This document shows positions 17,503-23,580 of a stretch of 64,000 nucleotides of DNA, in pieces. The notes beneath the pieces were generated by a model. It ran no database searches and had not been told where the DNA came from. It was given only the letters and a program-made list of their open reading frames with translations. Position 1 is the first letter of the stretch. Every line of letters begins with the position of its first letter. The stretch is from Paramoeba atlantica (taxonomy: Eukaryota > Protista > Discosea). Location of the stretch: the NCBI GenBank assembly GCA_977017575.1, contig CDRNVI010000024.1, forward strand, positions 248,001 through 312,000, read 5' to 3'. The translations under genes were made by a program, and so were the position numbers.

Positions 17503-18643
17503 ATGTCATCTAACCTTGGGGAGTTGACTGACTGTGGGCTCACACTTGCTTCGTTTCACCATTTAATTTATCAATGCGGTTTCGATCGCGATGTAGTAGA
17601 CGCCTCGTTTACGTGGTTCTACAACGGTGCTAGATGGTCTTCTGCCGCCAAGTTTATGTCAAAAAGGGGTTGGTCGATCCGATCCTGTAAGGATACAATT
17701 CCCAATTTTTTTTATGAACTTTACACAAAGCTGAGTGAGAAATGGCTTCTGAACCCCAGCGACGAGATGTTAAACCATCCGAACAATACAACCTTTGGTT
17801 TCTGGCCGCCGGATGTAAAGGTGTTGATAGACACTGTTCCCATCTACATGTATGTGGATGCAAGACCTGGGTGTTATAACCCAAAGTACCGAGGAACACG
17901 TACTCAAAGCTATGGTAGGGCGCACGTTGACAGGGTACGTTTGTTTTTTTGGGGATGGCTTGTATTGTGGCGCTTCATCTGATTCTGTCATTCAGGATTG
18001 TGGTGTACTTCGCTTTGTTTCTTCTCGCGGAATTAGAGCTTTGGCAGATGGAGGATTTTACGAATGTCAAAGAATCATAACTCCACACGCCAAAACGCAT
18101 ATATGGCCTTCTTTGCAGGCGAACAAGCCTATTTCTGATTACGTTCGCGAAGCAGATGTAAAACTTGCGTACAATGAGTCCTTATCTCATTTTCGCGCTC
18201 GTGTCGAGAATATTTTCAGCCGCTCTTGCACAGGCAGGTGGTTAGCATTCCGAAATTGGACTAAATTTTCAGATTCTCTTTTGTACTATAGTTTTGCATA
18301 TCGTTTGATAATTCATAATCTGGAGGTGTATTTACGTCAAGAGTGGGGAGGTAAATATTCTCCTTTTACACCGGAACGAGTCCGAATTCTAGAATGTAAA
18401 GTAAAGGAGCATAAAGCACAATCTTCCCGCTACTCTAATCCTCTCATGCAAAAAAAGCGAGGTCGTAGTGATGAAGAATTGAAACAAACTAACTTAGACC
18501 GTTTCATTGTTTATGATAAGAATTGTGCGGAAATAACGGCTTCTTCTGATTCTCTTCAACAGACAATCCTCGAGTCAGATCCAATATATGAACTCCCATT
18601 ATTGAACTTCCCATTACCCCTCCCCGGCTCACTCTTTAAGTGA
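17503..18643 (+). mobile_element. PIF/Harbinger-ISL2EU-like (DDE_Tnp_4 type) transposase with one frameshift
   Basis: LIDTVPI..YNPKYRG/HVLKAMVG..LADGGF..YNESLSHFRARVENIF. Removing one A at about 17895 joins ORFs 17503 and 17852. Confidence 0.7.
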
Positions 18644-18830: not shown

Positions 18831-19104
18831 TGTTCATGCATATATTGGATTTGCACAAATTTTCCACGATTGCTGGCCTGATTATAGGTGTCGTTGAGAT
18901 CTTTGTAGGAGGCATTGACCGGGATTGCGGATGACCGAGAAGATTAGTTGATATATTGTGTGATGTGTTAGGATGGGTGCAGATTTAAATTGCGGTGCCG
19001 CAGATTTTCAGACGTTAATGAACATGCCATCCTGCCTATTTATCGGTGGAGTCCGATTTTGCGAGTCAGACTGCCTGGTGACAGAGTTATTGTAACGCAA
19101 ATAA

Positions 19105-19206
19105 GCCCCAGTTCCCTTCTCGGGAACCGGGGCCTTCAAGCGAACTTAGAGTTCGAAGCTTCTCATACCAACAAGGTACAGAAACTGTATCTTTATCGTT
19201 AAAGTT
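19105..19206 (-). ncRNA. SL: Spliced leader RNA gene, copy 1 (exon 19206-19169; 3' end approximate)
   Basis: AACTTTAACGATAAAGATACAGTTTCTGTACCTTGTTG|GTATGAGAAGCT has the AACT cap start, the ACAGTTTCTGTAC core and the TTG/GTATGAGAAGCT donor of kinetoplastid SL RNAs, followed by two stem-loops. Confidence 0.92.
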
Positions 19207-19299
19207 AACAAGGGCTTTACCAACCACCAGAGCTCATTGTTCGCTTTTGTCAAACTGATGAACTTGTTGTTCCACGAGTCTTAGCCCAAAATGCAACCT

Positions 19300-19380
19300 G
19301 GAAACTTGTCTAGTGGCAGGGCGTGCTTTTCTGAGACTGACGAACCAAACTCCTGGTTCGATTCCCGCCCCGTCAATTTT
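19300..19380 (+). promoter_or_regulatory. Pseudo-tRNA Pol III unit (A box, B box, T4) divergent from SL copy 1; repeated at 19597-19677
   Basis: TGTCTAGTGG at 19307-19316, GGTTCGATTCC at 19355-19365, TTTT at 19377-19380. No intact cloverleaf. Confidence 0.6.
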
Positions 19381-19401
19381 CGCTTATTGTAACGCAAATA
19401 A

Positions 19402-19503
19402 GCCCCAGTTCCCTTCTCGGGAACCGGGGCCTTCAAGCGAACTTAGAGTTCGAAGCTTCTCATACCAACAAGGTACAGAAACTGTATCTTTATCGTTAAA
19501 GTT
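19402..19503 (-). ncRNA. SL: Spliced leader RNA gene, copy 2 (exon 19503-19466)
   Basis: Same sequence as copy 1, offset 297. Confidence 0.92.
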
Positions 19504-19682
19504 AACAAGGGCTTTACCAACCACCAGAGCTCATTGTTCGCTTTTGTCAAACTGATGAACTTGTTGTTCCACGAGTCTTAGCCCAAAATGCAACCTGGAA
19601 ACTTGTCTAGTGGCAGGGCGTGCTTTTCTGAGACTGACGAACCAAACTCCTGGTTCGATTCCCGCCCCGTCAATTTTCGCAA

Positions 19683-19760
19683 CACGTGGCAAACTGTAGC
19701 CATGTGCTGAATGTCAAAACACTTGCACGGAGGTTCGATCCTCAGCCCGTGTGACCTTTT
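19683..19760 (+). ncRNA. tRNA-like or vault-RNA-like small Pol III element
   Basis: Stems ACACG/CGTGT, TGGC/GCCA, GTGC/GCAC and GAGG-TTCGAT-CCTC, then TTTT. No canonical 7-nt anticodon loop. Confidence 0.35.
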
Positions 19761-19892
19761 CGAATGATAAAAACCCCGGAAGCCACTGCGCTAGCGTAAA
19801 CATGGTGAGTAGCGCCTCTGTGGGACACTCAGGATGAGGCAGATTGTCGTGGAAAATATTTCTTTCATAGTGGGGATTTCACAAGTCACGCC

Positions 19893-20011
19893 GGGTACGA
19901 CCATACTACGGTGAAAACACCACATCCCGTTCGCTTTGTGAAGTTAAGCACCGTCAGGCTCAGTTAGTACTGAGGTGAGCGATCGCTCGGGAACCCTGAG
20001 TGTTGTACTCT
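19893..20011 (+). rRNA. 5S: 5S ribosomal RNA
   Basis: GGGTACGACCATACT..GAAGTTAAGC..GTTAGTACTG..GTGTTGTACTC, about 119 nt, followed by a T6 terminator at 20011-20016. The 5' end is euglenozoan-type. Confidence 0.97.
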
Positions 20012-20610: not shown

Positions 20611-21603
20611 GGGGCACCCGCACCCTTATCTGTCATAGAAACTCGCACCCTTATCTGTCATAATGCACCCTTATCTGTCATACTGCACCCTTATCTGTCA
20701 TAATGCACCCTTATCTGTCATACTGCACCCTTATCTGTCATAATGCACCCTTATCTGTCATACTGCACCCTTATCTGTCATATAAGCCGCACCCTTATCT
20801 GTCATACTGCACCCTTATCTGTCATAATACATTTTTTGTTAATTTTCTGTGAATGACGGTGGAAGGTAGAGTCAGCACACGCATCGACTCAACTCATCGG
20901 TCGCATATCGCATTGTTATATCTCTGTCATTCTTTTTCGCGTCTACAGCTCCGGTTTTTTCTCTCTTTATGATATCTAGACCTTGTCGTATCTGGGATTT
21001 CCGTGGTTTGTCTCGGTGTCGCCCAATACAACTGAGCATCACCTAGGGCTTCGCAAATTGCTTCCCACGAACTCAGCGTCACACTTTGACGTGACTCATT
21101 GGCCCGGCCGGCCCCTCCGTGCGTTCGGCCTCTCATTTCCCCCAAAACAACTACCACCTTCCCCCCATTTATCAGGGGTCGCTCGCGCGACCGCAGCTAA
21201 ATAGGGGGGGAAGGTGGTAGTTGTGGGGTATGGAGGCCTCTCGCAACTCCGGGGCCTCACCGGGACCACAATTGAGGCTACCTATTTTTTACGTTAACTG
21301 TGTAGCAAAATTGTAAATTTTTGGAAGGGGTTGAATTTTTTTTTAGGGGTTGAAATCATTTTTAGGCCTTGAAATTTTTTTTAAGGGGTCGACTTTTTTT
21401 AATCGGTTTATGGCAGATAAGGGTGCGGCTTATATGACAGATAAGGGTGCGGCTTATATGACAGATAAGGGTGCAGTATGACAGATAAGGGTGCAGTATG
21501 ACAGATAAGGGTGCATTATGACAGATAAGGGTGCATTTATGACAGATAAGGGTGCGAGTGGGCGGTCGTACGCATCGGTGAAATATTCCGAGCCTTCGGC
21601 CCC
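20611..21603. mobile_element. Non-coding foldback/MITE-like element with inverted arrays of a ~20-bp unit
   Basis: Ten copies of GCACCCTTATCTGTCAT at 20620-20826 and seven inverted copies at 21411-21555. Confidence 0.75.
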
Positions 21604-23580
21604 TGGCAAACGCCTTCGGTTCCGTCCCACATGAAATAATTATCACAGTACTAAAAAGGGCTCATATCGACCCAGTTATTATCCATTACCTCCGAAAGCT
21701 CTATGAGAATGCAGAAATACAGCTCAAGCTGGAATCCGGACTTACAGAACCAATCAACGTACATATTGGAGTACTCCAGGGCGACACGCTTTCACCAATT
21801 TTATTTAACCTTGTGATGGAAACCATAATACGTTACGTTCGCAAGGCACGCCCCACTTTCGGGTACCATGACGGCCAGGACTCTCATTTCTGCAAAGCGT
21901 TTGCCGACGACGTGACTTTCCTTACGCAAACTCCGACGCAAGCACAAGAAGTCTCTGAAATCTTCGAAACTGCGCTCTCTTCCCTACTTATGAAGCCTAA
22001 CACCTCAAAATGTCGCGTCTACTGCTTGGGACAAAGCACACACCGTGGATTCACTACGCTCTCTCCTAAGCTTGTCCTTCGTAGCGAGGAGATCCCGCAT
22101 ATAGCTCACAAGGGTACGAAGTTCTTGGGTATGATATTGTCAACCGGAAGAAGCACACCCCGAGTGGTCTTTGATGAAATGCGGAAAAGGTTACGTACAA
22201 TGATGACCCGCATCGACCAGAGCAAGCACGCGATACATGCACGTATGTGGATGTACGAAAATGCGGTGTTATCCAGAATGCGCTATCTTCTCACTGTACA
22301 TGACGGGCTTACACTCAATCTCATCAAAAGACTACAGAAAACGTGCAGCCGCTTCCTGCGAAAATGGGTCAACCTTGCAGCATACGCACACCCCGACCAG
22401 CTCTACATCAAAAATGGGGGATGGGGACTAACATCAATGACCCAACTCTGGCGCGAATGCACCGTCTCCTGTCTTGCGACTCTCCAGTCTTCTTCGGATA
22501 TAGTCACACAACACGTATTAGAAGGGCGCATGGAATGGGAGAAAACTCTTGACTCCGCACACCACCACAGACCCGCTATCCTCGCAGCCGACCGACTTCA
22601 TGACAAACAGAGCACCAGAGCTTGGGTCCGCCGATACACCGAAAACGAGCTGATAGCTGAGTATCGTCGCCGCGCTCCCGTCGCAGCTAAATGGTTTAGT
22701 GAGGAGACAGATGCTGAGTTAGCTGAGGATTTTGCGCGAGCTCTGCACAATATACATGGAAAAGAACTCTCTCGGTTTACCTCGATGGTCATGACCAGTT
22801 ACGCCCCGCCGAGCCTATCTAACTCACGTGCATGGGGGAAGGCTGATGGACACGTCATCTGTCCGATCTGTCGTGAAAGGAAGCAAACCTTACGACATGT
22901 CCTAACCAGCTGTACAACATCTCTCTTACAAGGCCGTTATACATACCGACACAATATGATTTTGAAGGTCCTACTAGACACGCTTCGAAGTTGTGGTCAC
23001 ATACGAGCAATGTCTTTTGATCTACCTGGCAACCCCTCCGAGGAGCACCCACCATCATGGCTAGCAAACTTTAGCACACTACGACCAGATGGGTGGATTC
23101 TCCTAGAAGATGGCTCAGAATACATCATTGAACTCACCTCCCCGTGGGAAGAAAATTTTGATCAAGCCCGCGAACGAAAGCGCGCAAAGTACGAGGAGAT
23201 TTTGCGCTACCGACAGGCAACAAACGTACGCACGAGCCTCATAACATTTGAGGTCGGAGCTCGGGGCAAACTTAGCGATAGTACGCTCGATCTTTCCTGG
23301 GTATTCCCAAAAGATCATAAACACCACGTTCGCAAAATGCGTGAAAACTTTGCCCTTACTGCACTTCAGGCTTCATTTAGGCTATATACTATGCGACAGA
23401 ACCCCACCTGGAACCCACCACAAACAGCTTGAGTAGGAAAATCTCTTTCGGAACAAGATCCTGATCTTTGCGAGGACTATCCGGAGTGAAAATCTCTAGT
23501 GTACAGGGACCTGGTGAGCGGGTCCGTTAGCTCACGGACCGGGCTTGCTTGGCGCATGGAAAATGAAAATCAAAAAAAAA
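21603..23580 (+). mobile_element. 5'-truncated non-LTR retrotransposon of the RLE class (HERO/NeSL/R2-like); ORF 21603-23432, 3' UTR and A9 tail
   Basis: Open frame from LANAFGSVPH through GVLQGDTLSPILF, FADD, CCHC finger (CPIC..HVLTSC), GRYTYRHN, RPD and IIELTSPWEE. Poly(A) at 23572-23580. Confidence 0.9.

Follow-up and report, generated by a model that had tools for sequence, protein, structure and literature searches.

Which promoter, and which polymerase, makes spliced leader (SL) RNA at a locus where each SL RNA gene lies beside a divergent, tRNA-like element with A and B boxes? In kinetoplastids, SL transcription is the textbook case of a defined Pol II promoter; capping and cap4 formation are thought to be tied to it. 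To our knowledge, the SL RNA gene is a Pol II gene in every trypanosomatid that has been studied; its promoter works through tSNAPc, TRF4, TFIIA and TFIIB, and termination takes place at a T-run. For trypanosomatid U2, U6, U3 and 7SL, PMC4950102, citing Nakaar 1994, describes a divergent upstream tRNA or tRNA-like sequence acting as an extragenic A/B-box Pol III promoter. A sequence-only reading of the window (the whole 64-kb stretch of DNA analyzed here) had claimed this snRNA-type architecture for SL RNA.

A Functional SL RNA Gene in an SL/5S Repeat

The features on which the analysis rests are as follows.

19100..19206, minus strand: SL RNA gene copy 1 (sequence, fold, mRNA contigs, retro-copies)
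19397..19503, minus strand: second copy of the SL RNA gene, with the same sequence as the first (TRF, mRNA contigs)
19090..19101, again 19387-19398, minus strand: 3′ flank motif TTTGCGTTACAA, immediately following the last stem-loop of SL
19207..19294, no strand: spacer from SL +1 to the pseudo-tRNA start, with no block kept in position relative to the related locus L051
19295..19380, plus strand: pseudo-tRNA 1, with A box 19306-19316, B box 19355-19365 and T4 19377-19380
19592..19677, plus strand: pseudo-tRNA 2, identical to the first, with A box 19603-19613, B box 19652-19662 and T4 19674-19677
19681..19768, plus strand: a further tRNA-like element, distinct from the first, lying between the SL unit and 5S (sequence, fold), with the B-box-like GGTTCGATCC followed by T4
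19893..20011, plus strand: 5S rRNA gene of the same 2.55-kb repeat (Rfam RF00001, 99.2 bits)

TRF reported a perfect dimer at 19087-19680 (period 297, 2.0 copies, 100% match). The minus strand of each 297-bp unit carries one kinetoplastid-type SL RNA gene, and the two units are identical. The RNA starts at 19206 and 19503, with AACTTTAACG as its first bases. The exon occupies 19169-19206 in copy 1 and is followed by a splice donor between 19169 and 19168 (19466 and 19465 in copy 2) that reads TTG/GTATGAGAAG, the intron beginning with GTATGAGAAG at 19168. The kinetoplastid exon core and GU donor (…CAGTTTCTGTAC…TTG/GTATGAGAAGC) are present, in an exon of 38 nt as against the usual ~39, and a pattern made from this core and donor also retrieved the SL loci of other kinetoplastids in a metagenome scan. 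The RNA is predicted to fold into three stem-loops at -46.8 kcal/mol (z -7.0), far better than shuffles. The canonical Sm site (RAU3-6GR) is absent between stem-loops II and III. The window SL sequence is unlike prokinetoplastid SL, and an Rfam search of the window and the locus returned 5S rRNA only, with no match to an SL or tRNA family.

Contigs from four public runs of the same organism (X1, X2, X4 and X8) fuse 19169-19206 or 19466-19503 to many unrelated sequences; these are Logan contigs, not reads, which give junctions and not RNA ends, strand or levels. The exon is thus trans-spliced onto mRNAs and the gene is functional. Its 3′ end could be placed from retro-copies of the RNA (L044-L048, on C6, C83, C87 and C25), which run from +3 to GGGGCTTA(TT) and continue into A-runs. 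Because they stop there, the 3′ end of SL RNA is put at ~19100-19102, inside TTATTT.

Full-length copies of the unit, 99-100% identical to it, number at least 34 and lie on six contigs (C107, C97, C74, C11, C3 and C24) of the 45.7-Mb assembly, in which the window is C24:248001-312000. On C107 and C97 these form arrays with a 2.55-kb period, with further copies and arrays on C74, C11 and C3, and the flanks of the SL dimer in the window are part of the same 2.55-kb repeat. SL and 5S share one unit, a linkage also described for bodonids and other euglenozoans (Santana 2001, quoted in PMC7859406). The host of the repeat is a kinetoplastid of the free-living type, and SL/5S linkage of this kind is typical of bodonids (PMC7859406).

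The window locus sits between mobile-element remnants. An ORF with a DDE_Tnp_4 match (17852-18643, plus strand) overlaps the start of the SL/5S unit (18607) by its last 37 bases, and an ORF that weakly matches reverse transcriptase (RVT_1; 21813-23432, plus strand) lies just outside the 2.55-kb unit. Within the unit, a 20-bp repeat, GCACCCTTATCTGTCATAAT, forms two inverted arrays (20620-20828 and 21407-21556) that bracket ~580 bp. The tRNA-like element at 19681-19768 has an 8-bp 5′ hairpin and received no ARAGORN or Rfam call. A partial SL unit elsewhere in the genome (L043, C41:280663-280877) ends exactly at the exon/intron boundary, equivalent to window position 19169; it retains the exon, spacer, tRNA-like element and 5S side and is without the intron.

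A Divergent Pseudo-tRNA Accompanies Every SL RNA Gene

The pseudo-tRNA begins 88 bp beyond the SL start on the opposite strand, so that the two diverge. The first base of its A box, TTGTCTAGTGG, is at 19306, or -100 from SL +1; the A-box string of the sequence-only reading, TGTCTAGTGG, starts at 19307 (+101). A perfect B box, GGTTCGATTCC, follows at -149 (19355-19365) and a T4 at -171 (19377-19380). Only the two sites of the dimer match the perfect B box in the 64-kb window, where 0.03 matches are expected.

At the element, neither ARAGORN with default settings nor Rfam, even at E<=10, called a tRNA. At 80% of its threshold, ARAGORN reported a degenerate "tRNA-Ser" at 19306-19377. Since a call is obtained only at this lowered threshold, the element is described here as a pseudo-tRNA without an intact cloverleaf. 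The sequence-only reading had described each unit as an SL start followed on the opposite strand by an A box, a perfect B box and T4, with no intact cloverleaf; this layout proved correct in every detail and is identical in both units, and the default ARAGORN and Rfam results agree with the missing cloverleaf. That reading had also stated that it would be refuted by boxes absent from the main SL array; the A/B-box module is in fact carried by every array copy of the SL gene (at least 34).

The SL Layout Recurs at U6, U2 and 7SL in This Genome

Upstream of each of the assembly's kinetoplastid genes for U6, U2 and 7SL, a real tRNA gene lies on the opposite strand. Relative to each RNA start, the first base of the A box is positioned as follows.

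U6: divergent tRNA-Arg, A box at -97
U2: divergent tRNA-Cys, A box at -100/-101
7SL: divergent tRNA-Lys, A box at about -103
SL (window): divergent pseudo-tRNA, A box at -100
SL (relative L051): divergent pseudo-tRNA, A box at -101

For 7SL, the A box is at -114 from the start given by Rfam; a retro-copy (L037, C50) puts the RNA start 11 nt earlier, which gives about -103. The distance at the SL gene falls within the narrow range of the other three. The architectural part of the sequence-only interpretation, that the SL gene is built like an snRNA gene with an extragenic A/B promoter, therefore stands: the module is in all array copies, lies at the same distance as in U6, U2 and 7SL, and is kept in L051.

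In trypanosomatid snRNA genes, box A lies ~104 bp from the gene in an almost invariant position, and degenerate tRNA-like sequences can supply the boxes and are transcribed (PMC4950102). The U2 promoter of L. major (a tRNA-like sequence plus tRNA-Ala) is a close parallel in this respect, as a degenerate tRNA-like element there supplies boxes and yields a small transcript (PMC4950102). The window SL gene resembles the trypanosomatid snRNA and 7SL promoters in having a divergent tRNA-derived element, an A box ~100 bp from +1 and a tolerance of degeneracy; it differs from them in that the gene driven is SL RNA, there is no T-run, and the module has been multiplied with its gene in tandem arrays. 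Judged from the sequence, the layout is a form of the extragenic A/B-box promoter of trypanosomatids, here placed at an SL gene, and would be new for SL. The literature searched contained no description of A/B boxes upstream of any SL gene, or of the window SL sequence.

The main rival explanation is that Pol II makes SL RNA from a conventional tSNAPc-type promoter in the 90-bp spacer; the pseudo-tRNA would then be an independent Pol III neighbor, or a decaying tRNA that rides with the repeat as 5S does. In its favor, trypanosomatid SL genes are Pol II genes (PMC1888695; PMC7920299). Against it, the A-box distance equals that of U6, U2 and 7SL, an agreement for which chance offers roughly 10 positions among the 2 x 2556 of the repeat. 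We consider this rival unlikely.

Kinetoplastid U1, U4, U5 and U3 were not located; the Rfam U4 and ACEA_U3 searches of the genome were silent, and so were their controls, which makes these searches uninformative. Canonical full-length U6 (C148, C163), U2 (C169) and U1 (C143, C240) genes without upstream tRNAs are found at AT-rich loci of 37-40% GC (L031, L032, L039, L077 and L078). They differ from their kinetoplastid counterparts elsewhere in the assembly, in which a second eukaryote, for example prey or a contaminant, is probably present. The Rfam U1 matches are 161-nt canonical genes on AT-rich contigs (37% GC) that probably belong to this second eukaryote, and could not serve for comparison.

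A Relative with a Diverged Spacer Retains the Boxes and Their Spacing

The metagenome scan with the conserved SL core yielded five loci. One of these, L051, is a contig of 1.79 kb whose ends close into an SL/5S repeat with a unit of ~1.74 kb, a further case of SL and 5S in one unit as in the 2.55-kb repeat here. Its SL exon is identical to that of the window and its intron is similar. Stem-loop III carries a compensatory U-A to G-C change relative to the window; the 3′ end GGGGCTTATTTGCGTTACAA and the 3′ flank motif are kept, and the single-stranded stretch of the Sm region is AUUGGAAAG. A B-box-bearing element is present at the place equivalent to 19681-19768, on the opposite strand.

The spacers of the window and L051 are 45% identical and unalignable, and in this one relative no 6-mer is common to the two at matching positions. 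The tRNA-like element of L051 is 57% identical to that of the window and has a different predicted fold. Despite this divergence, the A box of L051 (TGGTCTACTGG) lies at -101 and its B box at -152, and a T5 is present. The sequence-only reading had proposed conservation of the box spacing in relatives as a check, and on L051 the outcome was favorable. Since boxes, terminator and distance are kept while the spacer and the tRNA-like fold diverge, selection appears to act on the boxes and their spacing and not on the spacer or the RNA product. At this level of comparison, the pattern is the signature expected of a promoter element. Against the promoter reading, L051 is one relative only, and the layout may have been inherited without function.

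The same comparison bears on Pol II transcription from the spacer. The elements of the trypanosomatid tSNAPc-type promoter lie at about -60 and at -30 to -40, and the two spacers share no 6-mer at a matching position there or elsewhere. Such elements evolve fast and differ in sequence between genera, so an unconserved spacer is no proof against a Pol II promoter. Harder to reconcile with it is the A-box distance, which is kept within 1 bp in L051 despite the unalignable spacer. A Pol II promoter in the spacer leaves the -100/-101 match and its conservation unexplained.

Three further loci from the scan (L050, L053 and L054) are SL/5S loci of other kinetoplastids. No A/B boxes were found upstream of SL in any of them (within ~113 nt for L053 and within 240-260 nt for L050 and L054); the descriptions examined of bodonid and euglenozoan SL/5S repeats likewise report no tRNA-like promoter module. 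All three loci end in T8-T13, and two of them, L053 and L054, have a U5-6 Sm site. A natural comparison set is thus available, in which the window lineage has boxes and no T-run and the other bodonid-type SL loci have a T-run and no boxes.

Partial word matches occur in marine and microbial-mat metagenomes. The SL pattern retrieved nothing from bacterial or archaeal genome contigs or from viral contigs. The 20-mer GGGGCTTATTTGCGTTACAA in one bacterial MAG was rejected, as it lies inside coding-like sequence and about one chance match is expected.

Indirect Evidence that the Pseudo-tRNA Itself Is Transcribed

A solo copy of the pseudo-tRNA on C54 (L042:1001-1086) matches the window exactly from 19295 to the T4; it then passes into SINE-like sequence and A12, and the whole is flanked by a 41-nt direct repeat. 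These features are consistent with a retroposed Pol III transcript that started 11 nt before the A box and ended in the T-run. On this indirect evidence, the pseudo-tRNA itself may be transcribed.

The retro-copies of SL RNA, 7SL RNA and the SL-linked tRNA-like element are chimeric, joined through A-runs to dispersed repeats that are either tandem units of AAGACCATCGTTTTTTAT or a tRNA-Ser/Leu-like SINE head, GGCGGAGTGGCAA. Such chimeras mark the ends of these RNAs and suggest that a template-switching reverse transcriptase is, or recently was, active.

Transcription of the element would suit a second alternative, according to which the tRNA-like RNA is itself selected, for example as a partner of the SL RNP in the manner of the tRNA-like RNA of the trypanosomatid SRP, or the tDNA serves as a chromatin boundary and so maintains an open array; in both cases the spacing would be incidental. 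The tRNA-like sequences beside L. major U2 are transcribed (PMC4950102). Neither version agrees well with L051, whose sequence diverges outside the boxes and whose predicted fold is different, and an incidental spacing fails to explain the -100/-101 match. We regard this alternative as very improbable.

SL and U2 RNA Genes Lack a T-Run and Share a 3′ Flank Motif

Canonical Pol III termination needs a T-run. No T4 occurs anywhere within the SL gene of the window or of L051, and there is no T-run downstream for hundreds of bases; the first T4 downstream of SL +1 is at +751 in copy 1 and +213 in copy 2, and only TTATTT is nearby. This agrees with the caveat in the sequence-only reading that TTATTT is the sole terminator-like signal downstream, as there is no T4 inside or just after the gene. 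The absence of internal U-runs fits transcription by Pol III, which such runs would stop; in a gene of 107 nt the absence of T4 is by itself not significant. A hairpin at the unit junction (CTTATT…AATAAG) was tried as a terminator and dropped, because it is not kept in L051.

The missing T-run is an argument against Pol III for SL and one in favor of Pol II. It is not an easy observation for Pol II either, since the T-run with which the Pol II SL genes of other kinetoplastids end is also missing. The U2 genes of the same genome put it in perspective. Both (L040 and L041; C56:311086-311245 and C79:79914-80073) are without a 3′ T-run, with the first T4 at +189 or +191, whereas U6 ends in T6 and 7SL in T5. 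U2 has a canonical tRNA promoter and also lacks a T-run, so the missing terminator is no stronger an objection to Pol III at SL than at U2. Termination of U2 in this genome is unusual, whatever the polymerase. U2 of L. major ends in a T6 tract (PMC4950102); U2 and SL genes without a T-run are therefore a peculiarity of the window lineage.

The U2 genes also share the 3′ flank motif of SL, in the form TCTGCGTTACTA, and the common SL/U2 consensus is [T/C]TGCGTTAC[A/T]A, placed immediately behind the last stem-loop. The shared motif was noticed by eye and after the fact in two gene families, and its chance probability is only roughly put at p about 0.003. A search for an A box followed after 140-280 nt by TGCGTTAC found the two U2 loci only and no further tRNA-linked gene. 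Other matches of the 12-mer 3′ motif in the genome were considered as snRNA genes and rejected, being members of a dispersed repeat family or coding-like DNA. A dispersed family of >330 bp that contains TTTGCGTTACTA (L059-L062, L066, L070-L074) is found on many contigs and is unrelated to snRNA genes; the excess of the 12-mer TTTGCGTTACTA in the genome is due to it.

These 3′ ends are what a third alternative would account for. In a hybrid promoter, the boxes would be needed through TFIIIC and TFIIIB, with Pol II or a mixture of polymerases on the SL side, and U2 and SL would form a T-run-independent class with a 3′-box-like signal. SL and U2 do share TGCGTTAC and lack T-runs, which U6 and 7SL have. 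In the literature, Brf1 and Tau95 give a weak ChIP signal on the Pol II SL loci of Leishmania and T. brucei, and a hybrid mechanism is for that reason still to be considered. The literature examined held no Pol II gene driven by tRNA boxes, and the trypanosomatid snRNAs of this layout are all reported as Pol III transcripts (PMC4950102). A hybrid promoter is in our view improbable, if less so than selection on the tRNA-like RNA or a chromatin boundary.

SNAP50 and the Candidate Polymerase

SNAP50 was examined as a possible discriminator between polymerases. In T. brucei, SNAP50 serves the Pol II SL promoter. An intact SNAPC3-domain protein of 456 aa, the SNAP50 homolog, is encoded on the kinetoplastid contigs C49 and C29; a SNAPC1 search of the genome found nothing, but that search was without matches anywhere. 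The intact homolog is a weak argument against Pol III for SL, favors a Pol II promoter in the spacer, and would equally be retained with a hybrid promoter. In L. major, SNAP50 is also located on tRNA and snRNA promoters and at strand-switch regions (PMC2679053), so its retention discriminates little. SNAP50 was accordingly set aside as present and not decisive.

Compared with the trypanosomatid SL genes, the window gene has a homologous RNA, the exon core CAGTTTCTGTAC...TTG/GTATGAGAAGC, three stem-loops, a tandem arrangement and a SNAP50 homolog encoded in the genome. Unlike them, it has an A/B-box pseudo-tRNA at -100 and no spacer element kept in position in L051; nor does it have a downstream T-run or a U-tract in the single-stranded stretch of its Sm region (CUUGAAGG), and its exon is 38 nt long. 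With respect to U2 of L. major and its T6 tract, the difference extends to both U2 and SL of this genome.

In full, these data are best explained if the pseudo-tRNA serves the SL RNA gene as its extragenic promoter module, a reading that we judge to have an even chance of being right. TFIIIC would bind the A and B boxes of the pseudo-tRNA and position TFIIIB in the ~90-bp spacer. Initiation would then proceed in both directions, giving an 86-nt tRNA-like RNA that ends at T4 (U4) and, ~100 bp from the A box, SL RNA. The 3′ end of SL RNA would form without a T-run, at the TTATTT/TGCGTTAC element common to U2. Dependence of SL synthesis on the A/B boxes is the part of this scheme that we think rather probable. 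Because trypanosomatid U2, U6 and 7SL work through such a layout, Pol III is the likeliest polymerase for SL RNA, with a chance that we put just short of even. The complete proposal, that SL RNA is made by Pol III from the pseudo-tRNA promoter and ended by a T-run-independent TGCGTTAC signal shared with U2, is put forward as tentative.

Implications for SL RNA Synthesis in Kinetoplastids

An SL gene built like an snRNA gene makes several questions testable: an evolutionary switch of the SL polymerase, m7G capping of a Pol III or hybrid transcript, the need for tSNAPc, and the termination of Sm-class RNAs without T-runs. If the proposal is true, SL caps would be formed independently of Pol II, and Kinetoplastea would hold two solutions to SL transcription, the Pol II promoter of trypanosomatids being just one of them. 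SL RNA supplies the capped 5′ end of every mRNA, and in this organism it may be made differently than in trypanosomes.
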